From the NCBI RefSeq assembly GCF_052425735.1, contig NC_135769.1, positions 2,046,001 to 2,110,000 on the forward strand: a stretch of 64,000 nucleotides of DNA, in the 5' to 3' direction. Source of the DNA: Oculina patagonica (lineage: Eukaryota). The translations under genes and the position numbers were made by a program. This document shows, piece after piece, positions 6,986 through 45,496 of the stretch (within the stretch, counting starts at the first letter, position 1; each line of letters begins with the position of its first letter). Below the pieces are notes generated by a model, which had not been told where the DNA came from, searched no databases, and saw nothing but the letters and a program-made list of their open reading frames with translations.

Positions 6986-9900
6986 ATGACCTCATTGATG
7001 CGCAAAAGATTGCTCCTGAAAAGGCTGGGCATTGGCATTGCACTTCATGTTCTAGAGGGCAAGTATCTTAAGTTTGGTATCTTATCCAGCCCACTGTGCC
7101 TCTACCATTGATCTCAATTACGTGCTTCAATCATTTAGCTGACCTTTAATGATTTTTGTAATCTATTTTCACGCAGCCCACAGCCCAAAATTCCATCGAA
7201 GATGTTTGCAGTCCACCATGACGTTCTCTTCAACCCACGACTACATTATTTGTGGAGCAGGATCTGCAGGCTGTGTTCTGGCAAACCGTCTGTCGGCAAA
7301 CCCTGAAGACAAAGTTCTTTTACTTGAGGCAGGACCTAAGGATTGGACATGGAAGATCCACATGCCAGCTGCGCTTATGTATAATCTTTGGGACACGAAA
7401 TACAACTGGTATTACGAGACAGAGCCACAAGAGTTTATGGATAATAGGTATAGAATTAATCATGATCATTCTAACTAAGCAAGGTCTTCAAAGTTCGGAT
7501 CAAATGCAGCGAGGAAAAAGGCGAAGGTCGATATTCTCCCAGTATGGTCCTGAACAAGCCTTATTCGCCGTGTCAAAACATTCTAATTGGCTAATGTTAG
7601 TTATTGGACTTCTCAGCTGTGTTAGGGATGGACCTTACGGGTGGGGGGTTGAGGATGAGCAATTACCCCCCCCCCCCCAAAAAAAAAAAAGAAGAAAGAA
7701 ACAGGAAAAGTATAGGGAAAAAAATTCACGCACAGCAAGCCAAAGGTAAAGCTGCCCAAGCTAAGGGTGAAAAAAGTTGCGGAAACACAAGTCGGAAACA
7801 ATTCTAGCCCACCCCCCCACCCCCGCCCAAAAAACATAATAATAAAATGGTCCAACCCTTAGTTGCGTAATAACGTAACAGCAGAGGGAAACGAGAACTA
7901 GAAATTTCAGAACTTTATTTGCTTGATTCTAGCAGTAGGTTATCAAAAATAATATTTCGAGCAGACAAAGCACTCAGTTTGCCTGGTAATTGTCTTGTAC
8001 CTTACATGTAAGGTACAAGAAGAAACTAGCTTGTCGAAGAAACTAGCTTGTCTTAGCTATATTAAATTCGAGGGTAAATAAAGTTTTATGTTATGTTATG
8101 TTATGAAATTAACTATCGGAAGATCTTCTATCGAGTAATATGAGGTCATATATAGACAATCAGTTGTCCGAGGAAATGACAATTTTTTTCCTTTTTTTGT
8201 TTTTTGCTTTTTGCTTTTTTTTGTTGTTGTTATTGTTGTTGTTTTTTTTGCTTTTCTGATAGAGTCATTTAAACTCTTAAACTTTGGTCATCACAAGTTA
8301 TTTTTTCTAGACGCATCTACCAACCTAGAGGGAGAGTATGGGGTGGATCGTCATCTCTGAATTCCATGGTGTACGTCAGAGGTCATGCTTATGATTATGA
8401 TCGCTGGGTAAAGGAAGGTGCTGAAGGCTGGTCATATGCTGACTGTTTGCCATACTTTAAAAAGTCCCAGACCCATGAATTAGGTACGATTTTGGTTTTC
8501 CATGGTTAGACAATTCTTCATGATATTTAAATCGTTTTAAAAAAGATATTTAACATTTGATTTTAGTTCCAAAACGTAATAACAAATTAAGTTATCCCAG
8601 GCCTGGAATAAACCAGGTGGGCTGTAGGATTCTGTCAGGAAGAGTTTTGTGTCAAGAGAGAATTTAGCTGCCCCGCCTTCTACCAATAATGCCCACAAAA
8701 CCCCTAGATGGACATCTGACAAAAAACGGTCGGCTTTCCGACATAGAGGACCACCATCTACGATAAGAAATCGCTGCGTCGCGGTCGTAATGCACACACC
8801 ACCTGACAGGAAATAGAACATCGTTACAGTGGTTGTTTCTTAGGCGACAGATCCTGAGAACACATCGAACCAAATAACATCTCACATCATATGAAGACAA
8901 CAACCAAATTAGACATTTTGTTTGATGCTCCTGTCAAATTCAGAAAAACGAAGTCACAGTAGATCGATACGTTACATTTATGTAGAATCTGATCTAAACT
9001 TTGAGGTCTCTGAGACTGTGACACCAACTTCAGCTAAAGACTTCATCAGCCTGGTGTGCCAGACCTTTTGGATCTTTCAAGAGGACCCTTTAGACACGAG
9101 AAAGGCCCGAGTGACACCTGAAGTTACACCTTGACCAGAGGTGTGGGTCTTTGACTGGGCGTGTAAGAACCCAGCAGTAAACTTACTTCGTAAGGTTAGC
9201 AAGGGGGAGAGGTTTTGCTACTGAAGTAAAGATCTTTAATAGGAATTTGAAAGTCAATGAAGAACAAAAAAATCACCACAAACAAAAAGGATGAATACGG
9301 GCGGCTACAAGAAGAGCATCGGCACGAAAATATAGTTAATGTAAGACTACTGAGTTGCTTGCTATCGAAATAAGTCGAGAACAAGACTCAGATTTCTACC
9401 TGAAATAGCGAGATAGATTATAATACAGCAAGATGCTAAATAAGTCTAAGTAGGTTAATTTTTTTAAATTTCCGTAGGTCCAGATGATTACAGAGGAGGC
9501 GATGGCCCTGTCCATGTATCACGTGGAAAATCAAACAATCCTCTATACCAAGCATTTATTGACGCAGGCATCCAAGCTGGCTATCCCTTCACAGAAGACA
9601 TGAATGGCTATCAACAAGAAGGATTTGGTTGGATGGACATGACAGTCTACAAAGGTGTACGGTGGAGTGCAGCAAATGCGTATCTCAGACCTGCGCTTAA
9701 GCGTAAAAACCTTCGAGCTAAAACAAGAGCAATGATCACAAAGATTGTGTTTGAAAACAACAAAGCTGAAGGTATCGAGTACGACTTAGACAGTCAAGTG
9801 AAGCGGGCCCGGGCTAGGAAAGGAGTTATTTTAGCCGGTGGAGCAATTAACACACCACAGATACTGAACTTGTCTGGTATTGGAAACGCTGACGATTTGC

Positions 9901-10100
9901 GGAAGCTTGGTATTCCTGTGAAAGTCCATCTTCCTGGTGTAGGATACAACCTGCAAGATCATTTGGACGTGTCTATACATCAGGTTTGTACCTATGCACG
10001 AAAAGTTGGCTTTCAACCGCCGACCGGTTAGCTTAGTTAGCTTTAGTTGGTAGAGCGCCGGACTACCGTGTGGGAGGTCTCGGGTTTGATTCCCAGACCA

Positions 10101-10136
<36 letters not shown>

Positions 10137-13100
10137 TATGTTGCCTTTGCAATGACATCTGCAATAATACCGCTTTGACGTTTATCAAAGGTGTGACCAA
10201 GGTACAGTAAAAGATGACCGTGACTCGTGTCAAGGGAACCTTTGATACGCTTTAAATCTGTTATAACTTTGAAGAACGTCAAATCCCTGTCAAAGGCGAC
10301 ATTAAAAGACTTGATAACTTTTGACATCTGTATCAAAGATAATCATCATTCTTTGCTTCACTTTTGATTCGACAAAGCCGACTTCTTGTGCCGAAGCTAC
10401 CAAGATCCGACCAGGTTTTGAAGCAGAATTGAAGACTCTGAAGCCTGCATAAGATGAATAGATGGGAACAGTTGACAGACCAAGCCCCTGCATGATTCCC
10501 CACCCGTTACTTAGGTCCTACATCCCGCTACATCCCATAAGCAAAATGTTTCCTAGTGTGCAAGCTCTTTTTGGCCATCAGAAGTTGAATATGGCAAGTA
10601 ACAATAACCACCATTTTGGTGGGATGTTGTTTTTATCTTTGCGCTTGTCCAAACAACTAGTTAATTCTCTCTTCTGTTCCTTAATCCAGATAGAAATAAA
10701 TTCTAAAAATGTTTTAGTGGGAGGAAACCCAGAAAAAAAACCTTGTAGCAACGCTGAGAACCAGCATCAAATTAAATCTGACTCACGTATGGAATCTGAT
10801 TCAAATCTGATTCACGTATGGAATGTGATTCAAATCTGATTCACGTATACCGAAATACAGTTAGTGGTTATAAGCGTGCCGTAAACGACTTTGTAAACCC
10901 GGCCCTACGTCCTGGTGATAATCCATGTGATAACAACTACGTTAACCTGTGATAACTTTCTCACGGTAACTCCCAAGTGATATCCCTTTGAAGTAAATCC
11001 TCCATTGTGATCACTTTTCAGGAATGTACACAGCCCTTAACTTTGTACCGCTCACTCAAGTGGTGGAACATGGTTCCTATTGGAGCCAAGTGGTTCTTAA
11101 CCCGGACTGGTCCGTGTGCCACTGGACATATTGAGGCTGGTGGCTTTATTCGCAGCAAGGAAGGCATCTCCCATTCTAACATCCAATACCACTTTCTACC
11201 CTTAGCTTACAAAGATCACGGTAGAGTGATTTTACAGAAAGAAGCCTTTCAAGTAAGAACATGATGTGTTTTATGATTTATCCTTACATTGCCTCAGTCT
11301 TTAATCTCAATGGCTGAATGGGAGGGAAAGGAAGCACCTAGTGAGAGCAAATATTATACCTCATTGGTGCTTACTTTCGCGGGTACTTAATTTCGCGACT
11401 TTGGCGAGACAGTATTTTGCGGGGTTTTATTTCAACGATTTGGCCAAAAAGGACGTTAAAAGCATTAAAAATAAATCAAAAACTTATGTTTCGCGGTTTT
11501 TGAGAATCGCGAAAATCGCGAAATTAAAGGCCCGTGAAATGAAGTAGAGGTGCTAAAGGAATCTAACTTGCTGTTTTTATACTTTAATTTAGTTTACAGT
11601 ACACAAAGCGTATTCTAAAACGTTAATTAGCGTCCCAATAAAATGAATCTTATTGAATTATGGCTGCTCTTGTCGTATCCCCTTTTTTTAGAATAAAATA
11701 ATTTTAGCAAGCGGGGTAACGCATTCATTCGGCTCAATTTTCCAATTCTTTTCTACGTTTTAAGGTATTTTTCTGTTCCTTGCGGACCACAAGTAAAGAG
11801 CATCGAAACCATATCATTTTACAGCCTTTTTCAGTTTCTGTTTTGTTTTCAAGGTTCACATTGGCTCCCTTCGAGCTCAGAGTCGTGGATATGTGAGGCT
11901 GAAGTCTTTGGATCCATATGACCATCCCATCATCAACCCCAACTACCTGTCCACTGAAGAAGATAGAGTGGAGTTAAGAGATGCTGTTCGACTAACCAGG
12001 GAAATCATCAAGCAGAAGGCTTTTGATCCTTTTCGCGGGAAGGAACTACAACCAGGTAAATGCACATCAATAGTTGATATACTTTCTTTGCAGCGTATCA
12101 TTTTTTGACACTTGTCACACAACACATCTCGTTTGAAGTACAGTCATCTCTCTCTAAGACGGACACCGTCGGGACCGGCCCCAACTGTCCGTCTTAGAGA
12201 GGTGTCCGTCTTATAGAGAGTCGAGGTAATGTGACACCAGAAATTCTGAGATAATAAAGATAAATGGCTATGCACAATCTTATGAATACACGTCTGTTTA
12301 AAGTCTGTTTAAAGTCGCTTACGTTAGCAAAACCTTCAAACTGGGACAAAAATATTAGAAAGAAAATTTACTCGTTTGCTCATTACAATGGATAATTTAC
12401 TGCTTCTGAGAAGTAAGCAGTACATACATGTTGCATACTAAACATGTCCATATGTATTCGCTTGTTAATGCGAACGTTCACGATTTATACTAGTTTAAAA
12501 ACTTAACTGTACACTTTTCAAAATACTAAAGAGACCGTATTCGTGCGTTGAAGCAAAAGTTGAGACCTTTTACAAGCTGTAAGTCAGTGGAAAACTTCCT
12601 CTTGTTACCCATACACTTAAGTAGAGAGGTAATGCGTTATAGCAGATTTTTTTGATAGGTTTGGTATCTTAAAGGCGCTGACTAACTTTGCTTTATGTCG
12701 ATACGAAGTTTTGAAGTATTATTCACTAAAAAAAAAACACTTAATGTGCGTGTCCGTTGGTAGCCGTCGTCTCTCTCCCCGAACGCAGCAAGCGGATCGG
12801 AGCGTGAGAGGCGGCTGTTTTCGCAGGCTAGTCCGTTGGCGGTTTCAAAGTGTCCGTTGTCCGTCTCAGAGAGGTTTCCGTCTTATAGGGAGTTTTGTCG
12901 GTTGCAGTAAAATGACTGAAAAACGGCAGGGACCATCATCAGGTGTCCGTTTTATGGAGGTGTCCGTTAAGAGAGAGTTGACTGTACTTTGTTTTGTATG
13001 TGTTTGTGGTGAGCCAGAAGAGTATCTTTGACGCAGGTTAAACCAGGTTAAGGTTAAACGACGCCAAGTCTTTACATGGGCCACTTATGCTTTCATTATT

Positions 13101-13538
13101 TTTGGAAACATTTTGCTCTTTCCTTCAATCCTTTTTGGTTCTAACATCAAGTTGTTCCTCATAGAAGACCACTTTTTACGTTTACTCAGTAATCGCACTT
13201 GACGCGTCTTTGTTTTTCAAGGTGACCATGTTCAAACAGATGAGCAAATTGATGCCTGGGTGCGACAAAATGCCGACACTGTTTATCACCCATCATGCAC
13301 GTGCAAGATGGGTGCCGAAGATGACCCGATGGCTGTCGTCAATAACAAAACGGAGGTCTTCGGAGTGGAAAATCTGAGGATTGTTGACGCGTCAATAATG
13401 CCGAGCATTGTGAGCGGAAATCTTAATGGACCAACCATTATGATCGCAGAGAAAGCAGCTGATGTTATATTAGAAAATCCACCCCTGCCTAAATCAACTG
13501 CACCAGTGTACAGGACGCCAGAAAAGGGACAGAGATAG
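6986..13538 (+). CDS. CHDH: Choline dehydrogenase-like GMC oxidoreductase, copy B (~590 aa). Exons 6986-7058, 7177-7447, 8311-8483, 9478-9983, 11022-11252, 11854-12055, 13222-13538
   Basis: Spliced ORF of 1773 nt: [14 protein letters not shown] presequence, [32 protein letters not shown] (catalytic His), [14 protein letters not shown] (catalytic Asn). The first coding intron is GC-AG. Confidence 0.9.
10016..10165 (+). mobile_element. tRNA-derived SINE fragment
   Basis: A-box-like TAGTTGGTAGAGCG and B-box-like GGTTTGATTCC, followed by a non-tRNA body. Confidence 0.65.
10773..10848. repeat. Short tandem repeat with a ~29-bp unit AAATCTGATTCACGTATGGAATCTGATTC
   Basis: About 2.6 copies visible. 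Confidence 0.7.
12141..12984. mobile_element. Tc1/mariner-type non-autonomous element
   Basis: TA|CAGTCATCTCTCTC...GAGAGAGTTGACTG|TA; internal ACGGACACC/GGTGTCCGT repeats. Confidence 0.8.
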
Positions 13539-24879: not shown

Positions 24880-27800
24880 ATGAGTATGTACAGCTTTTCC
24901 TTGAGGTTTGCTTGTAGAGCACAAATATCAAGAAAAACATTTGCATGGAAAACCAGGGGTCAGTTAAACCAGCTTTGTTTCTTTGTTTGCTGTTGGCGTA
25001 CTTAACTAATTAAGGCTCTTATTACAAGCAGGAAGGGTAACCCAAGTGCTAGGCTAGGGTAATAAATACCCTGGCAGGAGGGTCAAGAATAGCCTGGGTT
25101 ACAAACAAAATTTCACTGGAAGGGTTACCTTACCTCCCAGGACACCTTTATGTGTTTGGTAACCGCACATGGTTACCAAGCATCACAAACAACAATCAAA
25201 GGGTCTGGAAACCAGATGCAAGTTGTCATGGGTAGGCTAGTTGTCCTTAGCAGAACATTTACAAGGCAGCTAGGGTTACCCTTGCACTAGGGTAACCCTA
25301 GAACGAGGGTGGCATGCTAAGGTAAACCCTGGCTGCCTTGTTTCTTATGTTTGAATGCTGGGCCCTATTAGTTCTTGTGCTAAATCAGTTACTGAGGGTA
25401 AACAAATGTCATTTTTTTTTGTAAATATTTTAATGAAAAATGTGCAAGTGCTAGGGTAACCCTCTCACTAGAGTAATCTTAGCAGTTAGGCCCGTCGGGA
25501 GGGAGGTGCGATTGGTGCACCTGCACCTCCCCCCCCCCCCCCATGAGCTATAGAAGTCCACCTACTGTGGATCAATAGCTACATAGAAAATATTTTTTTA
25601 AAAAAATACTCTTCCCTTCCTGCTTATAAACAATGCTAAAAGTTTAATAACTGTACATTCCGTTCACTAGCAGGCCAAGTCCAACCAAGCGGTTTCAAGT
25701 CAACTTCGTCATTTTCGTCCACCCATGATTACATCATCATTGGAGGCGGATCTGCTGGATGTGTTCTAGCCAATCGGCTCACAGAAAATCCAGATACAAA
25801 GGTGCTTCTCCTTGAAGCTGGACCAAAAGACAACACATGGAAAATCCACATGCCAGCAGCAATGCCATACAACCTAGATGCTGACAGTCATAACTGGTGC
25901 TATACATCACAACCTCAAGAAAATTTGCAAAATAGGTAATTGCAATTTGTTTTCTTGATCTGTATTTCATAAGCGATTAAAAAGAAATACACTGGCAAAA
26001 CCATAGTTTTGCCAATGTTTAAGGTGCATTCTTAAAACGACCCTTATACCTTGACTCTGTCCCTTCCTTTTCAGGAGAAATAATAAGGGATAAGGAGAAG
26101 CCACGAGCCAAGCGGCCCACACTGCCGGAGCTTATCCCGGTTTCCGTAGCATTAAGCGGCTAGGAATATTTCTACTCCCCCCTGAATGGGATGCTAGTCC
26201 ATTGCAGGGTTCCCCCCCAGCATTATGTCGCCGGTACCCATTTATACACCTGGGTGGAGAGAGGCACTATGAGAGTAAAGTGTCTTGCCCAAGAACACAA
26301 CACAAGTGACCTCGGCCGGGGCTCGAACTCAGACCGCTCGATCCGGAGTCCGGCGCACTAACCATTAGGCCACCACGCCTCCCACATCAGGAGAAATACC
26401 CCCTTAAAAAAGAGAAGTGCATAGAGCACTAAAGAGTATAGCCTCCTCTGCAGGCAACTCCCTTTGTTACAGAAAAGAGACCTGGGGGGGTACTCAAAAA
26501 AGTTTTATACGGGGAGGCTCCACCCCGAGGTCCAACCCCTTACCCTTTTATATACCAGAAAAAGCACTCCTTTCGTATACCTGTTATAGAAAAAAGGTAC
26601 CTCTTTCATATACCTACACGACACAAAATATACTTAATTAAAACAGGACGTTTTCTTGACATTTTTTATGTAGCGCTTAATAAATTAAGACGATACAGCC
26701 ATAAGTTGCGTCTGTTCAAAATAATTAATTTATAGGCCTTTTTAAATATCTTAATGACAGATTTCCCTACCCTTTCATATACCTAAACTTGTGAAATCCC
26801 TACCCTTTTATATACCTGAAGCCTGAAAATGGTACCCCTTTCAGGCGGAGCCTCCCCATATAGGCCATTATATGGAGTACCCCCCCCCCCCCGGAAAAAG
26901 AGACTGGGACTGAGCAAAAGAGCAAAAAACAAGGGGGAGAGGGAGAAAGAAAAAGCACACCCCTTATTTTTTCCGGACTACTTCGTCCCCAGTCTTCCTC
27001 CCTACTAGTCCCACTTTTCTCTCTCTTCCTCTCTGCTACCACAGGAATCCCAATATTAAGTATTCAAAGGAGTAGCCTGTGGAGGAAGCTATCAAGAGTA
27101 AAGGGGCATCTAATTCCTTCATTTTGCCTCTGTTTGAAAACGAGTCCAAGGAACATGTTTGATTTACATGAGAAAGAACTTGCAGTAAAAGCATGAAATC
27201 ACCAGCACTTGTGTAGAAATGGAGGTATAAGGAACTCAGAAATGGCCTAGCCAATGCTTCCTCCGCTCCCTAACATTTCAGATTTGAGCCGAAAACTTCT
27301 ATACTGATGACAACTGGCTTTAACTGAGTCTTGAATTACAGCTTAGTCTTAAATTACAAGGATTCTCTTGAATTACAAGGATTCTCAGGCTACAAGAATA
27401 CTCAGGCTTCTCGCCTGATGGTAAAATAAACTGAGTGAGCATTGAAGCAATTCGTGAGTCGCGAGACTGGACCTTTAGCAACTTGCATTTCCTTTAAAAA
27501 GTTTTTATGGGTACAATAAAGTGGGTTGTGTGGTGTTGTTGTTGTTGTTGTTGTTTAGAATCCTCTGACAAATTGTCTTTTGTGGGGCTATAAAACTCCA
27601 ATCGTTTTCTGTCATGTTCTGTGTTGCAGGACCATGTATCATCCTAGAGGTCGAGTATTGGGCGGTTCCTCGTCGATAAATGCGATGATTTTCGCGCGAG
27701 GACATGCATTTGATTTCGACAGATGGGACAGAGAAGGTGCCACAGGGTGGTCTTACGCAGGTTGTCTGCCTTACTTCAAGAAGTCAGAAACCTACGAGCC

Positions 27801-30800
27801 TGGTACGTCTGTTCACGGGGATCGATAACAGGGGCCTTATCGCTAGCCTTCAAGCCTTATCATGCCCAGATGTTATGTTCGTAAGATTTTGACGCCCGAT
27901 AAGTTTGCCCTTACTGTACGAAATCCTTAGTGATTTCGAACCTCCTCTTTTTTTCTCCCAGGTGGTGAAATCACCAACGATTATCCGATTAGTTCCCTTT
28001 CCACTTTACACCCTCTCACTACTATTCCCTCCTCCTCCCCTCACCCCTTTCTCTCTGGTACTCTCGACATAACAACATGACCAAGTACAAGAATTTGCCA
28101 ATGATTTTAGAGCAGTGTTCAGTTAAGTGTCGTTAAACCAAAACCAAAGTAATTTACTCTGGCCAATCACAAAGGACACAGACAATCCAGTAAACCAGTC
28201 AAAACTCGAAGAAAATACATGTAGCCAGCACGAAGCGCGGGAAAATGTGGGCGAGCAAGACACCATTGCTTTTGGTTTAAGTCCTGATTGGTCGAGAATG
28301 TGGCGCGAGAATTTTAAACCAATCACTCAGTGTAGTAATGCAAAACCAAAGCCGAAGCGCAAATTACTTTCAACACTCAAGCAAAAACCGCTCTAACTGT
28401 TCAATCCAATTATCTTTCTTTGGTCTAGGTGCTAACCAATACCGAGGTGGAAGCGGCCCGCTGCGCGTGTCACGTGGTACAAGCTCCAACCCTCTGCACC
28501 AGACCTTTCTTGATGCAGGTATTGAAGCTGGCTATCCATCCACAGAAGACTTCAACGGCTATCAACAGGAAGGGATTGGGCGGCTAGATCGAACTGTGCA
28601 TGACGGAAAACGATGGAGCGCGGCAACGGCGTTTCTTAAACCCGCTCTACATCGAAAGAACTTATTCATTGAAACAAGGGCGCTGGCAAACAGAGTTCTA
28701 TTTGAAAACGACAAAGCTACTGGGGTAGAATACTGCGTCGGGAACTCAACAACAAGCGCGCGTGCTTCTAGAGAAGTTATTGTTTGTGGAGGAGTGTTCA
28801 ATTCACCGCAGCTTCTTATGTTGTCTGGTATTGGAGATGAGGAGGAGTTAAAGGCGTTGGGAATACCCGTGGTGGCTAATTTACCAGGAGTAGGAAAAAA
28901 TCTACAAGATCATGTGCAAGTTTATGTACAATATGTAAGTAATAAAGATAAGATGTTCTACATGACACGAGCATGGGACAAAGAAAAATTCTGAGTCCCC
29001 GACGGGAATCGAACCCATGGCCTCCCAGAATACCGGTTGGGCGCTCTAACCAACTGAGCTACGAGAGACTCGTTGTGAGCTGGGCCATTTTACTAGGTTG
29101 ATATGTGACACGCGTCCTACATACTGCTAGCATCAGCAATGTCGAATTCATCAAGTTTTGTAGTAAATAATAAAGATGGTAAATTTTAAGCTCGGTAATA
29201 AATAATAAAGATAAGATGTTCTACATGACACGAGCATGGGACAAAGAAAAATTCTGAGTCCCCGACGGGAATCGAACCCATGGCCTCCCAGAATACCGGT
29301 TGGGTATGGGTTCGATTCCCGTCGGGGACTCAGAATTTTTCTTTGTCCCATGCTCGTGTCATGTAGAACATCTTATCTTTATTATTTATTACCGAGCTTA
29401 AAATTTACCATCTTTATTATTTACTACAATATGTAAGTACATTTGATTAAGAACGTTTAGGGGTATCGAATGGTCTTTGCGAGCATGCGAGCAGAGCGGT
29501 TTTCTTTGCGAGCACGAGCATTGACAAAAGATAGCCTTGCGAGCAACGAGCACTTTTCAATAAGCTTCTTCTACTAAAGTCGAGCATGCGAGCACTTGAA
29601 AAAAGGTGCGAGCACGAGCAAACGAGCATCCACTAAAATTTTGCGAGCATTCCGAGCAGATGCCTAATTTTGCGAGCACCATTTATGACCCCTAACGTTT
29701 GTGCTATAGCTACTTGTTTGTGCGCGTCCTTTCTGCGCACGGATTGCGCGCAGTGGAAAAAACTGGACTGTGGTAGGGCCTGGTTGTTCAAAGGGTGGAT
29801 AACGCTATCCACCGGAAAATTCACTATCCAGTGGATAGCGTATTATATTCTTCAAGCACTTATCAACTCGATAGCGATTTTTTCATCCTTTGAAAACCCG
29901 GCCCTGGTGTCAGGGTGGTCGTCGCTGCAATATTGATCTTTGTATGGATTAACGATCTTGGATGCCCGGTACCCGCCGTTTTTCTTTCGATATATTACCA
30001 TATTTATTGATTATCTCCACTTTCACATAAAAAGGAAGTCTTTTTCCACTGAGGTGCGATCGAATTGCTATAATATGCGGTTGTGTAAGATTTGGAAGAA
30101 TTCTTCGTGGAGTTTTGTTCTCAGTCGTGAGAAATTACTACTCTCGTCATTTTCTGCTTAGCTAAGCTTTTATTTTGAGGCTTCCTTCAGTGTAAATAGA
30201 ACTTAGAGTGACGGAGAATAACTTGCGTCCTGATTAACCGTTGGACGTGATCAGAGGCGTGATTAGTATCTGAACATGTGTAAATCATATGACAAGCACT
30301 GCAGTCGGGGAAGCAAGGACCGTTTTTATCAAATCTGCGGCTACAACTCGTTTATGACAATTGTCCTTTTTGTAATAACTTTGAGTTCTGCCTGTATGCG
30401 ACGAGTGAGTCAAGATCACCATAAACATCATGTTCCTAGATGATGTTTTGGTCCACTTGATAAAAGATCCTGGAAGGTAGCAGGACACCTTTCGCTCAGG
30501 TCAAAGGTAATTAAGTCTGCATTCGACCCTAGTGGCCCATCGACCGGAGCTTATCCCGGTTTTCGTAGCATGAAGGGACTATAAGCATTTCCACTTCGCC
30601 TTGATGGGATGTTAGTCCATCGCAGGGTTACCCCTAGCATTAAATTTGTCGGTACCCCTTTATACCCCTGGGTGGAGAGAGGCATTATGAGAGTAAAAAA
30701 ATTTGCACAAGAACATAAGTTTAAAAGTTCACTAATCAGCCTTGTTACAACAGGAATGTCTCCAGCCCGTAACACTAAACAGCGCCTTTAAACTGCACAA

Positions 30801-32678
30801 CATGGTCATGGCGGGAACACAGTGGTTTTTATTTAAGAGCGGGACGTGTGCCACAAACCATTTCGAGAGCGGTGGATTCGTCAAAAGTGAACCTGATGTA
30901 TCACACCCGGATATAGAGATGCAATTTGTTCCTGTTGTTATGAGGGAAGCGGGGACATCTCAGATTATCCAACATGGATATCAGGTAAATAATTCACATA
31001 TACAGTCTTTTAAAGGTCTGGCAAAACGAGAAAACATGTTTCCAAGAACACCCGTAGCGCGCGCATGTTTCCCCAATGTTTCCAGGTTTTGCCACACGAG
31101 AAGCATTGTTTGCAGCGTCAACTTTGTCTCCAAGAAGCAAAATATGCTTCTACTACACGGCAGAAACATAATTCTGTGTTTCTGCGTGACATGGAACCAT
31201 GGCAAAACGAGGAAACAATTTTGAAAACAGATTTCTGAAGACATGTCGGCCTCGTTTTACCAGGCCTATAAGTGAGCAAAATGGGAACTGTGTGGTGGCC
31301 TCATGATTGGTACATTACGGATTCGAGACTGGCCAACGTGAGGAAGAGAAACGATAAATTGGCGTTGTCCTTTATATATATAAAGTTAAACATAGATTAT
31401 GTCCTAATAGCATCTGTAACATTTTTAACGAGCATAATTCCACGTATAACCTGAGACAATCAGATTTTTCTACTCCTAGATACAACACTGTTACTTATGG
31501 AAAGCACTCTTTGCGTTGTGTTGGACCCAAACTATATGGGGCAAACTTTCTACGGCTGACAGATCAGCCAAGACACTGCAGGCTTTTACAAACCGTATTC
31601 ACAAAAGGGATATAACTCGCTTAATGGACAACGGCTGTAAGGGATGCATCCTATGCTGCACATANNNNNNNNNNNNNNNNNNNNNNNNNNNNNNNNNNNN
31701 NNNNNNNNNNNNNNNNNNNNNNNNNNNNNNNNNNNNNNNNNNNNNNNNNNNNNNNNNNNNNNNNNNNNNNNNNNNNNNNNNNNNNNNNNNNNNNNNNNNN
31801 NNNNNNNNNNNNNATTTTTCTATATCATAGATTATAATAACATTTTTATATGACTTATATATATTTTTATTGTATTTATATTTAGTATTAGTGTAGCTTT
31901 TAGTTTTTAGCAGTGTCCCCTAATTAGTATGGTATTATTTTCCAGGCTATAAGGTTTTGACACTTAAATAAAGTTTCTTATCTTATCTTATCTTTATCTT
32001 TCCGCCAAACAACCGTTTCTGTAACACTTTTTGTTTATTTTGTTTCAGCTCTGTATTGAATTCCTAAGACCCAGGAGCCGAGGCTTTGTCAAGCTGCGGT
32101 CACGTGATCCACTCACTCATCCTGTCATTCAACCAAACTATTTGACACGTGACAGCGATCGCCGGCTCATGAGGACCTGCGTACGAATCGCCCGTCATGT
32201 GCTCAACCAGAAGGCCTTTGAACCTTACAGAGGAAAAGAATTAAAACCAGGTTTGTTAAAGATCTGTCTTATGTGGAAAATGAATCTCTTGAAAGAGCTC
32301 TAATCTGCGCGAAATCTTCCTGTCTTTGAGAGCGCCTGGTTTCCATTGTTGTAACGCATTTCCTCACCACTCTTCGTAGGTACATCATGTAAAACAGAAG
32401 AAGAAATAGATGCTTTCGTACGAGGATTCGCCAAGACCGATTACCATCCCTGTGGCACGTGCAAAATGGGAGCCGACGATGATCCGACGGCTGTTGTCGA
32501 CAAGAATACGCGAGTCTTCGGAGTCGACAATCTTCGGGTCGTGGATGCGTCTGTTATGCCCAGTATAGTCAGCGGTAATCTGAACGCGGCCACGATCATG
32601 ATTGCGGAAAAGGCAGCGGACTGCATTTTAGGGAAACCGCCATTGCCCAAGGAACATGTACCAGTCTATGGCAAATAG
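24880..32678 (+). CDS. Divergent choline dehydrogenase-like GMC oxidoreductase, copy D (~584 aa). Exons 24880-24958, 25671-25935, 27630-27802, 28429-28934, 30754-30984, 32049-32250, 32380-32678
   Basis: Spliced ORF of 1755 nt; [19 protein letters not shown] presequence; [11 protein letters not shown]; GGSSSINAM; QDHVQ; [12 protein letters not shown]; SGNLNAAT; same intron positions as A-C. Confidence 0.88.
26100..26385 (-). mobile_element. tRNA-derived SINE, near full length
   Basis: tRNA-like head with GGTTAGTGC and GTTCGAG boxes on the - strand; same body as 57283-57555. Confidence 0.8.
26481..26895. mobile_element. CCnGGGGGG-TACT MITE nested in an older TAGCC-ended element (~26439-27091)
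   Basis: 8-bp TSD AAAAGAGA; inverted copy of 33861-34285. Confidence 0.8.
28109..28395. repeat. Interspersed TIR repeat (TAGAGC...GCTCTA); related copies at ~16820-16951 and ~20722-21008
   Basis: Shared AAACCAATCAC...GTAATGCAAAACCAAAGC...AAAACCGCTCTA. Confidence 0.7.
28942..29428. mobile_element. tRNA-containing retro-like insert with tandem plus inverted (hairpin) structure at the exon 4 donor of gene D
   Basis: tRNA-like segment 28994-29069 (-); direct repeat 28941-29041/29204-29304; inverted arms 29158-29282/29306-29429; 15-bp duplication TACAATATGTAAGTA. Confidence 0.8.
29458..29694. mobile_element. hAT-like MITE (TAGGGG...CCCCTA); related copy at ~3518-3740
   Basis: TIRs; ACGTTT on both flanks; GCGAGCA internal repeats; absent from E. 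Confidence 0.7.
31390..31995 (+). mobile_element. LINE (CR1/L2-group) 3' fragment spanning the assembly gap
   Basis: [30 protein letters not shown]-like peptide; AATAAA followed by a (TCTTA)n tail. Confidence 0.65.
31665..31813. other. Assembly gap (149 N) in intron 5 of gene D
   Basis: Run of N. Confidence 1.
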
Positions 32679-33860
32679 TAGATCTTGATCTTTCGTTATT
32701 TTTACGAAACTGTAGTGCGTCGGGAGCTCCTAAAAACGCGGAAATTTATTTATATATTTATATTGTGGTTTAATTTTATATTTGGATTAAAATTTTTCAA
32801 ACCAGTTTGATTTTGATTTTTCATTGTCTTGTATTCATTATCATAATCTGAAACAAAGGGAAATGAAAATCAAACTGGTTTGAAAAATTTTAAACCAAAG
32901 ATAAAATTAAACCATAACATATACACGCCGGTCACTGTCAACAGTGATTTTCCCAAAAGGGCGGCGGGTCTAATTCGAAGGTCACAGGTCACAGGTCTCT
33001 GGTAACTGGCCGCTTAATAGGAGGCCGCTTGATAGAGGTTAAACTGTATAAATTTCGTATTAATTGAAATTATTGTGGCATCTGTAATATTACTTGGCTT
33101 CACACTAGAGCTCGTAAGTATAATCTAAGTGCAATTGGAACCTACTTGAGTGTGAAGGGGTAAAACGTACTTACTTGAACTTTACTTGGTGACCATGGAA
33201 ACTTTCGTAGTTCAAAGAAGCCGAAGTACGCCACCAAGTATGGTCTACACCACACTTGAGAACGCACTTGACCAATAGGAAATGGAAGCCAAATGAGAGC
33301 GGCGTGCAGCGTTGTCACGATTCTGAAGATGATTGACGGCTTGTACCTCAAGTAATATACCATGTCGTCAAGTGTGAAGCCAAGTTTTGTAAAGTGCGAC
33401 TTGAGATTTTCAAGTGCACTTGACTCAAGTGCTGACTTAAAACTAACTTAGCTTCTAGTGTGAAGCCAAGTAATAACTAAAAATGATTATTTATTGATTT
33501 AATGTAGTTCATTGTTTGCTTACGAACCTTGGTCGTTAACTTTCGTTATAACAGAACTCAAACGACGGAAGTGTTGATAGAATTCGGGTTTTCTGCGCGA
33601 TGAAACGTATCATTTTAGTTGCCTGGGCTGTTATTGGCTGTACAGAGGGAGAACATTGCACGCCCATATTGAATCTAATTAAAGAAGGTCAATTACGATT
33701 GTAGACGTGTTAAGAACACTGTCTTTCGGTATTATTGTTTAAAGAAATATTAGAATCCCGATTTCTTTAACCTGCAGGGGAAATGAAAATTGCTTCGAGA
33801 AATCGGGAGGTTCGTGAAATCAGAGGTAAAGTTATAGAGGTGTACTATATGACCCTTGAT

Positions 33861-37197: not shown

Positions 37198-40100
37198 ATG
37201 AGGATGTACAGCTATTCCTTGAGGTTTGCTTGCAGAGCACAAATATCTAGAAAAACACTTGCATGGAAAACCAGGGGTTAGTTAAACCAGTTTTCTTTCT
37301 TTGTTTGCTCTTGGCTTGCTTTAACCCTAGTGCTTGGTGTTTTTCTAGTCGGAGGTAGGCCTTTCTCGATTATGCTAGCATTTTTTTTCGGCATTTTTTG
37401 GGAAAACGAGCATTTTTTTTTTTTCGTTTTTTCTTGAAAAAGAATTGCTAGCATTTTCTGTCATTTTCATGACTGTGATCCAGATTTCAGCACTCAGAAC
37501 TCAGAAGGATAAATAATCCTAAAGTTTCACAATTTTGATTACTTAATTTGATTGTTTTCTGTCTGTTTCGACTGTTTGTGCGTTGTGTTACTTGTGTTAC
37601 TTGTGTTGTGTTACTTGTGTGTGTTTGTTTAATTTTTTTAAAAATATTTTTTTAATTTTTTTTTTAAATAATTTTTTTTAAATAATTTTTTTTATTATTT
37701 TTTTATAAACAAACAATTATTAAGTATCACCTGTTGTTGATATGAGCATATAATGTAAGAGTTTGTACGTTTTGTTTGAAATAAAACAAAGCATTCTTTG
37801 GAATTCAAGTGGCATTTTTTAAAGAAATCAGGCATTATTTTAGCATTTTTTTGGCTTTATGCGAGAATTTCTAGTAGCATTAAATGCCAGTTTTACTAGC
37901 ATAATCGAGAAAGGCCTAGTCGGAGGGTTAAAGAAAACCCCCCTTTACAAGCAAACTTTCACAGGTAAAGGGTCTGGAAACCAGTAGAAAGTTGTCCCGC
38001 CGACCGGGTATGCAAGTTGTCCCTGGTAGAACATTTACAAGGCAGCTAGGGTAATTACCCTGGCACTAGGGCACCCGAGAGCTATTGTAACGCCCTAGGG
38101 TAAACGTAGTACCCTAGTGCTAAGGTAACTCTAGCACTAACGCCATTTAACCCCTTCTGCTAGCAAACATGGCCTAAAGTTCAATAACTTTACATTTTCA
38201 TCTACTAGCAAGCCAAGTCCAACCAAGCAGTTTCAAGTCAACTTCGTCATTTTCTTCCACCCATGATTACATCATCATTGGAGGCGGATCTGCTGGATGT
38301 GTTCTGGCCAATCGGCTCTCAGAAAATCCAGATACAAGGGTACTTCTACTTGAAGCTGGACCAAAATACAACACATGGAAAATCCACATGCCAGCGGCAA
38401 TGCCATATAACCTGGATGGTGACAGCCGTAACTGGTACTATACATCAGAACCTCAAGAAAGTTTGCAAAATAGGTATTAGCAGTTTGTTCTCTTGGTCTG
38501 TATTTCATGAGAAATTAAAAAAAAAATAAAACTGGTGAAACTGCACTTAATTCTGCCAATGCTTTAGGGGCATGCAACAACCTTTTCACCTACAGTTTTT
38601 CCCCTACTTGCCGGATAATAAAGTAGAGTAAATGAGCATCGAAGCAATGCGCAAGTCGCAAGACCGAGTGTGTGGAATTCCCAGACAAGTGTCTTTTGCG
38701 TGGCTAAAATCCAATCATTTTCTATCTTGCATGTTGCAGGACCATGTACCAGCCGAGAGGTCGAGTATTGGGCGGATCCTCGTCGATAAATGGAATGATT
38801 TACGCGCGAGGACATGCATTTGATTTCGACAGATGGGACAGAGATGGTGCCACAGGGTGGTCTTACGCAGATTGTCTGCCTTACTTCAAGAAGTCAGAAA
38901 CCTTTGAGTCTGGTACGTCTTTTTACTGGAATCCCAGGGACTTTAATGCTAGAGACGTAGCCTTCAAATCTGATCATGCCCAGATGCTGTGTTCGTAAGA
39001 TTTCCCCCCCCCCCCCATAATTTTGCCCTCATTGGGAGAAATTATTAGTGATTTCGAACTTCCCTTCTTTTTTCCTGCCCCGTGGTGAAATCATCAGCGT
39101 TTAGCCCCCTCTCCACTATTGCACCCATCCCACGCCTACTATTCGCTCCCCTCCTTCTCTGGAAACCTCAACAAAACACCATTACAAAGTACAAGAATTA
39201 ACTGATGACTTTAGCTGTCCTTCGAATTCTACTGAATCTAGTTACCTTTCTCTGTCCAGGAGCTAACCAATACCGAGGAGGAAGTGGCCCGCTGCGCGTG
39301 TCACGTGGTACATGCTCCCACCCTCTGCACCAGACCTTTCTCGACGCTGGTGTTGAAGCCGGCTTTCCATTCACAGAAGACTTCAACGGTTATCAACAGG
39401 AAGGGATTGGGCGGTTGGATCGTACTATACATGACGGAAAACGATGGAGTGCTGCAACGGCTTATCTAAAACCCGCTCTACAGCGAAAAAATTTAGTTAC
39501 GGAAACCAGGGCGCTGGCAAACAGAATTTTGTTTGAAAACGACAAAGCTACCGGTGTAGAATATCGCGTTGGGAACTCAGCCAAATGCGCGCGCGCTTCT
39601 AGGGAAGTTATTGTTTGTGGAGGAGTGTTCAATTCACCGCAGCTTCTTATGCTGTCTGGACTTGGAGATGAGGAGGAGTTGAAAGCGTTGGGAATACCCG
39701 TGGTGGCTAATTTACCAGGAGTAGGAAAAAATCTACAAGATCATGTGCAAGTGCATGTTCAATATGTAAGTACATTTGATTAAGAACGTTCGCGCTACTT
39801 GTTTGTGCGTATCCTTACTCATTCTCGTCCCCATGGCCCTTTCGTTTTTCTTAGCCGGCTGGGCCTTGGCAGAAAACGAAAGGCTCTGGGGACACAGGAT
39901 CTCCAGTCTTAGATTCAAGGACTTCCGGTCTTCATATATGCAGTCATGGTGTTTCAAAAAAAAATGTATAAGAGAATCGTTATGCTTTCGACTCCCGTTT
40001 AGGTATTCTTTGTTCCAAACAGCCAATCAAAAAAAATTCGAATTAATTCAAAAATCATATGTCCCCAGAGCCCTTCGTTTTTTCGTGCCAAGCCGGCTAA

Positions 40101-43100
40101 GAGAAACAAAAGGGCTATGGGAACGAGAAAGATCCTAACTGCGCACCAACCTCGTTCTCAGGGCCTCTCTCTCCTTTTCCTCCTCCTATCGTCGAGGAGA
40201 GAGGAGGAGGAGAAAAAAGCGAGAGGCCCTGTGAACGAGGTTGACTGCCAACGGGTTGCTACGTAATGATTCGGGCGCGCACAATGGAAGAAACTGGACA
40301 ATTATTGTACTGGGTTCAGTTGTTTAAAGGGTTGACAGCGCTATCCACTGCACCTGATAAATCACTATCCAGAGGAAAGTATGGTATGTTTTGCAAACAC
40401 TTATATCCACTCGACGGCGGTTTTTTCTAGCGGATAGCGATATCCACGTTTTGAAAAATCGGGCCCTGTTTAGGGTGGTGGCTGCTTCAATATCTTGGCT
40501 TGGATTTAACGATCATGATTTCCGATGACCCCCGTTTTTTTAATAGATAACCATGTTTTTATTATTATTTCATAGATGGTAAACAATCTGAAATCTCCCA
40601 CTTCTCTATACTGGTACGATAATTAAAATTTCGCGCTCCAAACCATTTTCATTTGGCTGAGCCGGTTTAAGTTTATTTAAAGGGACTGTGTCACGGCTGA
40701 GTTAAGTTTATTTTATTATTTTTGTCAAATACTCGCTATGAAACTTAATGTTTGCAAAGAAATTACTTCTATGGATCGAAATGACGAAACCATAGCTTCA
40801 TTGCAACCACATGTGTCTCCCGGGCGTTATAATTTAAAGCTAGAAGCAAACAAGATTAACTTTGAACACTGTTCAGCCCAACAACATTTCAAAAACCCAT
40901 GTCGCAATGCGTTTCAATCTTCGTCGCTTTTGGCCATCCGTACTTTCTTTTGTATTTGGAGTGTTATTGAAATGTTCTTTCACCGTTTTAAGAGGTTATT
41001 TTTATATTTTTAACGAACTTAATGGCTTGCCTAAATTTAGCTAAAATCCGTGACACAGTCTCTTTAAGGAGCTATGTCACGCAATTTTAGGCAATTTCGG
41101 CACTGACGAACTAGTCATAGAATGAACTGAAATATCGCAATAACGGCTTAAAACTGTAGACGAACTCATAAGAAACACAGAAAGGCCAAAAAGTGGCATG
41201 GATGGGCAAAATTCGAGAAGATTAGCACGGATTGCGTTCGGGTAAACTTGAAAAACGTCGGCCCGACCTTTTTTTTTAAAAAAAAAGTTTAATGCAATTT
41301 ATATGAAAATGTCATTTACAATGCTCGAAAATCATCCTTGTTTGTTATTTGGCCGTAATTTTGCTAATAAAAGACTTTTTGCTCTGCCAATTTGAAGTTT
41401 AGAGCTCTCAATTAACGAAAATAAATAGAATTACCTAAAAAACCGTGGCATAGCCCCTTTAATCAGCCTTGTTACTACAGGAATGTACCCAGCCGGTAAC
41501 ATTGAGCAGCGCCTTTAAACTGCACAACATGGTCATGGCGGGAACACAGTGGTTTTTATTCAAGAGCGGGACGTGTGCCACAAACCATTTCGAGAGCGGT
41601 GGTTTCGTCAAAAGTGAACCTGATGTATCACACCCGGATATAGAGATGCAATTCGTTCCGCTTGTTTTGGGAGAATCGTGGACATCTCAAATCCATTCTC
41701 GTTCCCAGAGCCTTCCGTTTCTTTTGGTCACGTGGTCGGCGAAACGAAGGGCTCTGGTAACACTGACTACCGGATGTCGTAAAATCCACGACATCCGGTA
41801 GCGCATGCCCACTGCATAAATGTTCGTCTGCGCCTGCTCAGTAAAAGAAAGGGGAAGGCTGGGGCTGACTTAGACGAGAAGAAAGCGAATTTGAAAGAAG
41901 ATACGACATTTGAGTTTGGCGTTCGAAAGAGCTGTACAGCAATCCTTGCTACAATTGTCGGAGGACATCAAGAAACAAGGAATGGAACAGGAAGACGGCA
42001 GATAGAAAAGTTAGAATCCAGAGGAATTGGAGTCATAGTGTTTAAACACGGAGTCGAGGAAATCATCAGCTGATATAAACATTCCGACGGTTGATGACTG
42101 TCTGTGAAATTTATTTATGGCCATGCGGAGGTATTGTAGAAAATTCAGAGCTAAAAAAGCGGCTGAGCGATGAGGTATCATTCTATTGAGCGGCGGTAAG
42201 AAATATCACATTGAATTTCAAAGTCTTCATGTATTCATGAACTCCATTTAGTGTGTATATCTTGTATAAGCTAAGTTAACGTTGATAGTGCAAATGTTTG
42301 CAATATTTTTAATGCAATAAAAAGTACAACCGAGTTACACCTTACAAAAGATGTACTTTTCATTTGTTCATAAACAAAGGTCTGCTTCGTGAATATGTTA
42401 TTCCAATAAACTCCCAACAAACTCCCAGACTGTTATTCGGTCTTTTTTCCGGAAACATTTTCAAACTGACCGGAAGTATAACGAAAATTGCGTAGAAGCG
42501 TTTCATTTTTTTACCTAATTACGCATGCAGTTTTTATCAGCCAATCAAAAAAATCATATTTTTTACCGTTACCAGGGCCACTACGTCATGTCATTTAAAA
42601 AAATACGCGTGGCCCTGGGGAAGAGGATGTCTCAAATCCAACATGGATATCAGGTAAATGGTTCACTTACTTATAGTTTAAATAGTTGGTTGTTCTATTT
42701 ACTGCTCGAGGGCCTCTCGCGCGGGGGTCGCGCAAGGAGAGTTAAACAAAAAAAGAAAATTTTGCATCCATCAATTTCAGTCATCGAAAATTGTACTGGA
42801 CATATATTAGTTTTAGTCTGAGCGCGCTAACTATTTTAGACTTGTTCGGATTTCGGCCACACTGAGTGAGCAAAATGTGGCCGTGTTCACACTTAGTGCC
42901 CGAGCACTGGTACCTGGGCACCGATAAAAAATAGCGTCGTGTTCACACACAGAAAACCAAAATACCCAAGTACCATTAAGTGACCGAGTGACCTTGTACT
43001 CGGGCACGGGCACTGTTCCCGAATTATGACGTGGGCACTTGAAAAAATAGTATGTTCACATTAGTGCCCAGCGAGAATCGTACCCAGGAACCGTACCCAG

Positions 43101-45496
43101 GCACCAAGTGTGCATACAGTCGAAGCTCTCTTAACGGACACTCTCGTAAGCAGACAGCTCTACTTACGGCCACCTTGTTTGAAACCTCGTTTTAACTCCC
43201 ATACGAATTCTGTATTTTTACATTCTCGTAAGCGGACATTCCCGCAAGCGGCCGCGGACTCTTTCAGAGATTACGACTTTTTCTTTGTTTTTAAGCTCCC
43301 GTAAGCGGACAGTCCAATGAAAATTGCATCTGCATCTTGTGTTTATCAATAAACTTCAAATCGCCGTTCGTCACAATGATTTTAAAGTGATTACAGTACC
43401 ATATCTCAGTGCTTGTTTTGTCGTCATCCACGTCCGTCCGGTTATTGTTAGCTGGGCAAGCTCCCTTGAACGGCCATTAAACCCCTACACCTCTAGTGGC
43501 CGCTTACGAGAACCAATCTCGTAAGCGGCCAGCTCCAGTTACGGACACTTTTTTCGCGTCCCGAGGGTGTCCGCTTACGAGAGCTTCAACTGTACAAACT
43601 CAAGCCTTATGGTGTTATGATTCAGGTACATTACGGGTTTGAGCCTGGTCATCCTACGTCATTGTGACACAGTGCCTCTCTTTACTCAGGTGTTTTAACG
43701 GGTAACGGCAAACTGTTGGGATAACATGACAAAAATTAGATGGGAGGGGTGGGGAGTAATATGCAATGAGCTGACATGCGACCCGGGGGGATACCAGTAC
43801 TTCTAGTCGCTTAATGCTATGGAAAGCAATATTACCCGGTAGTTTGGTGAGCCACAAGTAGGCATAAATAGATTGTGCTCAGCAACTTTTGAGCAACTTT
43901 TTGTAGCACCAGCAAGCTAGGGCAACTTTTGCCTTCCTTGGCAACTTTTGAGCAACAAATTGATATAAAACCGATCCAAACCATAAAAGTCGTTTCATTT
44001 CGAGGGATTTTTATCTTTTTTATCTATTTTTTATTTATTTTTTATTTTTTATCTATAATTGAAATTATGTTGAGTTTAAAGAGTATATTGATTAAAACAA
44101 AGTATTTATATTTCTCATATAACAATGGCTTTTTGGACTCTTTCAATGATTGTAGAATATTTAATGAAAATTTTTAAATGGCAACAAACAGACAAACACA
44201 TTTATCTAAAACAAAACGACTCTAGAGCAAGCAATTTTTCTAAATTTTGGTGGCAACTTTTTGATATTTGAGCAACTTTAAGGTATATTGTGAAGCAACT
44301 TTTCCTGAATTTACTAGCACAATCTATTCATGCCTAGCCACAAGAATTAGGAAAGAAAACGATTACTTGCCACTGTCTTTTCCACTCCGTAACAAGTTTT
44401 ATTTATTGTTTATTTTGTTTCAGCTCTGTATTGAAATTCTAAGGCCCAGCAGCCGAGGCTTCGTCAAGTTGCGGTCACGTGATCCACTCACTCATCCTGT
44501 CATTCAACCAAACTATTTGACACGTGACAGCGATCGCCGGCTCATGAGGACCTGTGTACGAATCGCGCGTCACGTGCTCAACCAGAAGGCCTTTGAACCT
44601 TACAGAGGAAAAGAATTAAAACCAGGTTTGTGAAAGATCTGTTATATGTGGTTTTGTTGGGATGTACTGACCCGAGCAAAATGAATCTCATGTTTTCACC
44701 GATAGCTCTAAAATAGCGGTAACCAGCGCGATATTTTCTTCTCTTAAAGAGTAGACTGTTCGGCTAAACTGCAGGAAACCCCGCAACTTATTTGCATCCT
44801 ATTGTTTTCTGCCTCTTTCTTGAAAGAGTTCCCGGACTCGGTGAATCTCATTTGCGGGGTATTCTGCAGTTGCTCTGGCTGTTCACAACCTCTCTATTTT
44901 TCAACGCGAGAGAAACAGCATTTGAAGAGTGCGCGAAGCACGCGGGGGCGGGGGGTGGGGGGCGGTGGTCAAGCCGAGCGAGCGAAAGAGTTATTTCTGG
45001 GTCGCCCACTACATCTCGATCGGAACGAGACATTTTATTGGCTCTTAAAACAATAGCGGCACCCACCTCCTCTCGCCTCCCGCTTGCGCTGACTTCCAGC
45101 TCTCTCGCGATTCTTAGGTAGAGGATTGTGAACAGTCTAATTTAAGGGCGCTGGGCTTTCATCGCTGTAACACATTTCCTCGCCACTCTTCTAGGTACAT
45201 CATGTAAAACAGAAGAAGAAATAGATGCTTTCGTACGAGGATTCGCCAAGACCGATTACCATCCTTGTGGCACATGCAAAATGGGAGCCGACGATGATCC
45301 GACGGCTGTTGTCGACAAGAATACGCGAGTCTTCGGAGTCGACAATCTTCGGGTCGTGGATGCGTCTGTTATGCCCAGTATAGTCAGCGGTAATCTGAAC
45401 GCGGCCACGATCATGATTGCGGAAAAGGCAGCGGACTGCATTTTAGGGAAACCGCCATTGCCCAAGGAACATGTACCAGTCTATGGCAGATCGTGA
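37198..45496 (+). CDS. Divergent choline dehydrogenase-like GMC oxidoreductase, copy E (duplicate of D). Exons 37198-37276, 38209-38473, 38740-38912, 39260-39765, 41481-42653 (interrupted by a TE at 41694-42629), 44424-44625, 45195-45496. May be a disrupted allele
   Basis: All exons are in frame and D-like, except for the transposon insertion 15 nt before the exon 5 donor. Confidence 0.75.
37356..37918. mobile_element. hAT-type MITE
   Basis: TIR TAGGCCTTTCTCGATTATGCTAG; 8-bp TSD GTCGGAGG. Confidence 0.85.
39820..40131. mobile_element. MITE with related termini (CATTCTCGT...ACGAGAAAG), 9-bp TSD
   Basis: TSD ATCCTTACT/ATCCTAACT; absent from the matching intron of D. Confidence 0.8.
40147..40243. 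mobile_element. 97-bp MITE (CAACCTCGTTC...GAACGAGGTTG)
   Basis: Terminal inverted repeat; degenerate 9-bp TSD; absent from D. Confidence 0.7.
40681..41458. mobile_element. Two adjacent Kolobok-type MITEs (~40681-41063 and ~41068-41458) sharing a TTAA
   Basis: TTAA|AGGGACTGTGTCACGG...CCGTGACACAGTCTCT|TTAA|GGAGCTATGTCACG...GTGGCATAGCCCCT|TTAA. Confidence 0.7.
41694..42629. mobile_element. 936-bp non-autonomous TIR transposon inside exon 5 of gene E, 9-bp TSD TCTCAAATC
   Basis: Imperfect TIRs CATTCTCGTTCCCAGAGCC / GGCCCTGGGGAAGAGGATG; TSD at 41685-41693 and 42630-42638; empty site in gene D. Confidence 0.9.
43117..43592. mobile_element. Tc1/mariner-type MITE nested in an older element (~42879-43606)
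   Basis: TA|CAGTCGAAGCTCTC...GAGAGCTTCAACTG|TA. Confidence 0.8.
43859..44336. mobile_element. hAT-type MITE
   Basis: TAGGCAT(A/G)AATAGATTGTGCT TIR; 8-bp TSD GCCACAAG. Confidence 0.85.
44752..45139. mobile_element. MITE (TAGACTGTT...AACAGTCTA) in intron 6 of E
   Basis: Terminal inverted repeat; absent from the short intron 6 of D. Confidence 0.7.

Follow-up and report, generated by a model that had tools for sequence, protein, structure and literature searches.

In the genome of the coral Oculina patagonica, we found two tandem genes, here called D and E, that belong to a conserved sister clade of choline dehydrogenase (CHDH). Fairly probably, they encode (gene E before an insertion into its fourth exon) a neofunctionalized flavin adenine dinucleotide (FAD)-dependent dehydrogenase for an alcohol substrate that is new and probably still positively charged. 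Both genes lie in a 64,000-nucleotide stretch of contig NC_135769.1 (RefSeq assembly GCF_052425735.1, positions 2,046,001 to 2,110,000, forward strand), referred to as the window, in which positions are counted from its first letter. Together with their counterparts in other assemblies they form what we refer to as the D-type clade, whose members, judging from their pocket residues, probably oxidize something other than choline. The clade amounts to a natural experiment in GMC enzymology, with the textbook choline-binding Glu and His replaced and the catalytic residues kept.

Glycine betaine and related osmolytes are abundant in corals, and we know of no assigned host enzymes for most of these compounds. 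The literature searched (coral glycine betaine genomics and choline dehydrogenase) holds no description of the D-type clade, and the survey of Ngugi et al. (2020; PMC7240134) counts betA and codA homologs with no such group set apart.

Family Membership of Gene D

The predicted product of gene D is a member of the FAD-dependent GMC alcohol dehydrogenase family. Exon 3 reaches 116.9 bits with PF00732; with PF05199, exon 5 reaches 44.7 bits and exon 6 reaches 96.5 bits. All of these values exceed the gathering scores. Every aligned sequence, D-type or canonical, has the dinucleotide-binding motif, His492, and Asn536. With animal CHDH and bacterial BetA (solved structure 9lq0; NF002550 and TIGR01810), gene D shares the GMC two-domain architecture, 57–62% identity, the FAD motif, the catalytic His and Asn, and the equivalents of Tyr465 and Trp61 of choline oxidase; it differs from them at five invariant or nearly invariant positions and by a long stem in the phylogeny.

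The exon pieces of gene D sum to 707 bits against NF002550 (cut-off 605). As this NCBIfam subfamily score passes, automatic annotation would label D-type genes “choline dehydrogenase,” and pathway reconstructions that count them may over-count choline oxidation and overlook a different reaction. Against the betA equivalog TIGR01810, for which only exon pieces were scored, the sum is 639 bits (cut-off 732.1). A canonical coral protein (P0161) cut likewise sums to 696 bits, about 57 more than gene D, and reaches 791 when scored whole, from which we estimate about 734 bits for D, i.e., about at the cut-off.

Two pocket features of the BetA/CHDH family are missing from the D-type sequences. None has an acidic residue at the position of choline oxidase Glu312 (Gln in D, E, the eight orthologous loci L001–L008 described below, 15 exon 3 clusters, and the fragment P0127), nor a His at the His351 position followed by His-x-Gly on the next strand (Gln382, Cys404, and Glu406 instead). 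The choline oxidase (CodA) signature is likewise absent from gene D, which has Ile and Ala at 99 and 101 and Gln, Gln, and Asp at 312, 351, and 464.

Substrate-Pocket Residues

An earlier note on this DNA had proposed, from motif alignment, that D and E carry Gln, Gln, and Asp in place of Glu312, His351, and Val464 of Arthrobacter globiformis choline oxidase (2jbv, 4mjw). Alignments to 2jbv and 9lq0 place all three residues as proposed. Exon 3 of gene D aligns end to end with 2jbv residues 150–317, and the codon CAA at 28917–28919 (39748–39750 in gene E), inside the motif NLQDHVQ that aligns to D309-H310-P311-E312, encodes the Gln at Glu312. The second Gln (CAA, 30922–30924) lies in HPDIEMQF, which lines up with PNIQYHF of BetA position by position; exon 4 alone gave no choline oxidase match in phmmer, and the equivalence to His351 was taken through the canonical protein P0009, whose DH-x-E falls on D309-H310-P311-E312 and whose hpdiqyhf falls on R345-P-D-L-M349-M-H351-Y. 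Residues 3–82 of exon 6 align with 2jbv 447–526, so that KTDYH (Asp codon GAT, 32439–32441) supplies the residues at 464, 465, and 466. In the choline oxidase crystal structure, glycine betaine is contacted by Trp61, Ser101, Ile103, Trp331, His351, Val464, Tyr465, His466, and Asn510, and Glu312 is named as the stabilizer of the positive charge (PMC10980864), in agreement with the counter-charge to the trimethylammonium group that the note had assigned to it. By equivalence, the exchanged residues thus lie in the pocket or at its edge, as the note had supposed.

We compared six D-type with 27 canonical sequences from corals, echinoderms, hemichordates, amphioxus, and bacteria. At position 320 of gene D (Glu to Gln, choline oxidase Glu312) the canonical enzymes have Glu in 25 cases and Asp in two, at position 382 (His to Gln, His351) they all have His (27/27), and at position 490 (Ala to Asp, Val464) Ala is found in 24 of 27 and Val, Gly, or Asn in the others. 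Two clade-wide changes on a pocket strand extend the earlier list: His404Cys (32052–32054, choline oxidase Thr376) and Gly406Glu (32058–32060, choline oxidase Asn378), where the canonical residues are His and Gly without exception (26/26 each). By these counts, the changes in D and E are not ordinary family variation. Positions 404 and 406 share a strand with a single residue between them, so their side chains likely face the same way.

The earlier note had also listed a change from DIQ/NIQ to DIE, and with it two gained acids. The change is present in D and E (Glu380; GAG at 30916–30918, choline oxidase Met349), where all 27 canonical sequences have Gln, but it is not a clade character, since position 380 is Glu in five of the eight orthologous loci and Gln, with DIQ kept, in the other three. 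Of the two acids, Asp490 is clade-wide and Glu380 is not; the second clade-wide acid is Glu406, which the note had missed.

The catalytic residues are retained around these replacements. Gene D keeps the dinucleotide-binding motif, the equivalents of the catalytic His466 and of Asn510, Tyr465, and Trp61, and a hydrophobic residue at Trp331. Exon 2 aligns with 2jbv 85–140, with matches at Arg89, Val92, Gly95, Ser97, Asn100, and Ile103. A common fold and the same residues for hydride transfer (His466, Asn510) link gene D to A. globiformis choline oxidase, and the pocket positions of the two map one to one, at an overall identity of about 30%; they differ in that gene D has Cys and Glu at 376 and 378 and, as in BetA and CHDH, Ile for the covalent-flavin His99 and Ala for Ser101.

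Relative to the canonical enzymes, the D-type clade has 12 fixed replacements, five of them on pocket elements. The canonical enzymes show at least 93% conservation in 186 columns, of which the clade fully keeps 153, and at pocket positions defined from the literature, clade-fixed replacements are 25- to 37-fold enriched (Fisher p = 1e-3 to 4e-5).

Directed evolution has retuned choline oxidase through the same positions at which the D-type changes fall. In choline oxidase, His351 and Asn378 are on the beta-sheet under the substrate, and H351V with N378S jointly shift the enzyme to other alcohols; the laboratory-evolved A. chlorophenolicus enzyme S101A/H351V/N378S/Q329N is altered at positions 351, 378, and 101 (PMC10991250). 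These evolved variants move from choline to other primary alcohols, which shows that the three sites set specificity. The direction of change is different, however: the evolved variants turn less polar and accept neutral cyclic diols, whereas the coral clade has gained two carboxylates, Asp490 and Glu406, suggesting that its substrate is polar or cationic.

The Asp at the Val464 position might instead concern the flavin. Placed near N5/C4a, and together with the loss of two His, it could alter redox potential, oxygen reactivity, or acceptor coupling, any effect on alcohol specificity being secondary. Val464 adjoins both substrate and flavin in choline oxidase and reportedly controls its oxygen reactivity, and none of the other four changes is as drastic as Ala/Val to Asp. 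We nevertheless regard this explanation as improbable, since it leaves unexplained the concerted changes on the substrate side at 320, 382, 404, and 406; it is also compatible with a substrate shift rather than exclusive of it.

Distribution, Phylogeny, and Selection

D-type loci were found on eight contigs from eight other assemblies (L001–L008). All eight contain the six exons and Gln320, Gln382, Cys404, Glu406, Asp490, His492, and Asn536. In an exon 3 search of exon-level open reading frames (ORFs), DH-x-Gln was present in 14 of 14 clusters at 70–86% identity to gene D, in P0001 (63%), and in the fragment P0127; the remaining matches checked, at no more than 64% identity, have Glu, Asp, Gly, or Arg at this position, mostly Glu. 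A search for the contigs encoding P0127 or P0273 found none, and a profile built from P0009 and the gene D exon pieces returned only canonical enzymes, though gene D itself would score 510 bits against it.

The neighborhood is also shared. A LIM gene follows the D-type gene in L001 and L006, as in the window, and a canonical CHDH gene adjoins it in three assemblies (L007:586-2298, L008:309-5490, and L002:135-371 on the minus strand), lying just upstream in L007 and L008. These shared neighbors indicate that the array and its surroundings are old and syntenic. L006 has a second D-type exon 6 (L006:1951-2238) about 11 kb upstream of that of its main gene (L006:13172-13469), which suggests a tandem pair like D and E. 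The main gene's exon 6 matches gene D in two frame-offset pieces, for which a frameshift or a misassembly could be responsible.

All D-type genes in the tree fall into a single clade with full support in the Shimodaira–Hasegawa-like approximate likelihood ratio test (SH-aLRT 100) and a stem length of 0.38. Its sister group within animal CHDH is formed by the canonical coral genes (support 80). Because the canonical states are common to bacteria and deuterostomes, the D-type states are derived. The clade is under purifying selection: pairwise ratios of nonsynonymous to synonymous substitution rates (dN/dS) are 0.08–0.16 between D-type orthologs, at dS of 0.28–2.5, and 0.20 between D and E.

Structure and Transcripts of Gene D

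Gene D (plus strand) has six recognized coding exons. The first (25640–25935) carries the FAD-binding GGGSAGC motif and is uncertain in its 5′ limit; the second (27630–27802) encodes GGSSSINAM, with Ile at the position of choline oxidase His99 and Ala at Ser101; the third (28429–28934) includes Gln320. Exon 4 (30754–30984) encodes HPDIEMQF with Glu380 and Gln382, exon 5 (32049–32250) Cys404 and Glu406, and exon 6 (32380–32678, with the stop codon) Asp490, Tyr491, the catalytic His492 (His466), and Asn536 (Asn510). The frame runs over 568 codons uninterrupted by any stop, and each of the five introns has GT..AG borders and a polypyrimidine tract. Intron 4 (30985–32048) holds an assembly gap of Ns (31665–31813). 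The alignment to 9lq0 shows no loss across the exon 4/5 junction (HGYQ|LCIEF).

Gene D is transcribed and correctly spliced. Spliced contigs were found in three public runs from three studies (X1, X2, and X4), and over the region 27550–32750, with the stated cut offsets applied, their joints (27802|28429, 28934|30754, 30984|32049, and 32250|32380) are exactly the modeled introns 2 to 5; the joints 28934|30754 and 30984|32049 are present in all three runs. As contigs join 30984 straight to 32049, intron 4 is removed together with its gap and the reading frame is continuous over it. Some contigs are identical to exon 3, and none has variant letters reported at the codons of Gln320, Gln382, and Asp490. 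With no intron-less copy in the 529-Mb assembly, the spliced contigs represent transcripts rather than a processed copy. Raw poly-A reads of a further run (X23) have almost zero depth on the gene D exons, which has no bearing on expression.

Given its intact frame, its splicing, and its low dN/dS, we reject the readings of gene D as a pseudogene or an assembly artifact. A broader form of the same idea, in which the pair consists of decaying duplicates or encodes a pseudo-enzyme without catalytic function and the pocket changes simply record loss of function, is to us very improbable. The insertion in exon 4 of gene E, the absence of the canonical Glu and two His, the low depth of the transcript contigs, and the missing start exon would fit it. 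It is opposed by a gene D frame without stops and with splice sites that are all canonical and used, by low dN/dS across a long divergence, by catalytic His/Asn and FAD motifs that are invariant in ten D-type genes, and by replacements that are the same five, fixed and not scattered. A shift of function rather than decay is supported by conservation of the substitutions in the eight loci, the selection estimates, the kept catalytic residues, and the spliced transcripts; residues of catalysis left untouched, five pocket exchanges made once and then held, and expression fit a change of function, not a loss.

Two side observations concern the introns. Intronic contigs from X2 and X4 skip 154–164 bases across the gap at 31661–31826, showing that public data cover the gap region. 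Repeats at 28072–28245, 28942–29811, and 30508–30855, some of them resembling tRNA-derived short interspersed elements, have contig depths of 10^3 to 10^4.9 in X1, X2, and X4, and come from abundant transcribed repeat families.

Possible Functions of the D-Type Enzymes

We propose that the D-type clade arose by tandem duplication of a mitochondrial choline dehydrogenase in stony corals, and that the walls and floor of its pocket were rebuilt on the clade stem by Glu320Gln, His382Gln, His404Cys, Gly406Glu, and Ala490Asp. These exchanges would remove the Glu that is the counter-charge to trimethylammonium and two His, one of them substrate-positioning, and would place carboxylates anew, at 490 beside the flavin and at 406 on the beta-sheet floor adjoining 382. 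Substrate preference has then probably shifted, most likely to a different alcohol or aldehyde hydrate with a positive charge (amino, ammonium, or sulfonium), with the hydride-transfer chemistry presumably unchanged. We infer that the pocket of D has a geometry like that of choline oxidase and BetA, in which choline would be a poor substrate.

The main alternative is that D is still a choline (or betaine-aldehyde) dehydrogenase whose charge has moved from 320 to 490 and 406, making it an isozyme that differs in affinity, pH profile, regulation, or step preference within the same glycine betaine pathway. We consider this unlikely, although its place within the CHDH/BetA family and its identity to the canonical enzymes, together with the kept aromatic cage and catalytic residues, speak for it. 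Against it, five positions that are 89–100% invariant from bacteria to deuterostomes have changed together and then been frozen for dS > 1, and up to three canonical copies already adjoin D in the genome. In choline oxidase, moreover, Glu312Gln and substitutions of His351 are said to strongly impair choline binding and hydride transfer.

Several points weigh against our reading of D as a dehydrogenase with a new substrate. Acids remain in the pocket, and Asp490 might take the role of Glu320, so that choline would still be the substrate. The summed betA equivalog score of D lies about at the cut-off, not clearly below it. The pocket placement follows from sequence equivalence, which for the 404/406 strand means about 30% identity to choline oxidase. 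No convincing start-codon exon was found by in-frame extension and cross-species tblastx, and it is a guess that the runs yielding the spliced contigs, whose depth is low, are RNA.

For the neofunctionalized dehydrogenase proposed here, a more specific role can be put forward only tentatively: D-type enzymes may possibly be dedicated dehydrogenases of non-choline onium or amino alcohols, for example, for the precursor of one of the other betaines or sulfonium osmolytes that accumulate in corals. If so, the coral animal would gain a second and as yet unassigned osmolyte-forming oxidation step, encoded beside its choline dehydrogenase genes.

Gene E and the Choline Dehydrogenase Array

Gene E (38196–45490, plus strand) is a tandem duplicate of D with 92% amino-acid identity, and shares all five pocket changes as well as Glu380. 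Its exons lie approximately at 38196–38474, 38738–38926, 39256–39765, 41481–41693 (with 42640–42657), 44418–44627, and 45194–45490. An insertion of about 960 bp, flanked by repeated CTCAAATCC, breaks exon 4 after ...TSQI (41693); the last six codons of this exon and its GT donor resume after the insertion at about 42640 (region 41693–42657). Gene D is therefore the intact representative of the pair. Gene E may still be transcribed, as one contig from X4 has E-like letters at its 3′ end.

The ORF pattern of the window is eukaryotic, with short ORFs and a GC content of about 40%. Using exon peptides and full-length relatives in tblastn, we found five GMC genes in tandem, A (−), B (+), C (−), D (+), and E (+), each with six recognizable coding exons; when the entire 529-Mb assembly was searched in six frames, only the five copies of exon 3 inside this window were found. 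Genes A (up to 2704, minus strand, cut by the window start), B (7206–13523, plus strand), and C (21266–16312, minus strand) are canonical choline dehydrogenase paralogs with DHLE or DHLD, NIQYHF, HxG, and A/V-Y-H motifs, and their six coding exons are at the same positions as those of D. A Pocillopora damicornis protein shares 86.5% identity with exon 3 of gene A, and a transcript-derived protein shares 93%. These identities point to the genome of a stony coral or of a close relative.

Gene B has Asp for Glu at the Glu312 position (DHLD, about 9960–9990) and HSNIQ for HPNIQ (11022–11255), which is a milder pocket variation inside the array. In gene C, the 3′ end of exon 3 occurs a second time, in degenerate form, directly upstream of exon 4 (18649–18575, minus strand), and the catalytic His is followed by HL rather than HP; from these two features, gene C may be damaged or alternatively spliced.

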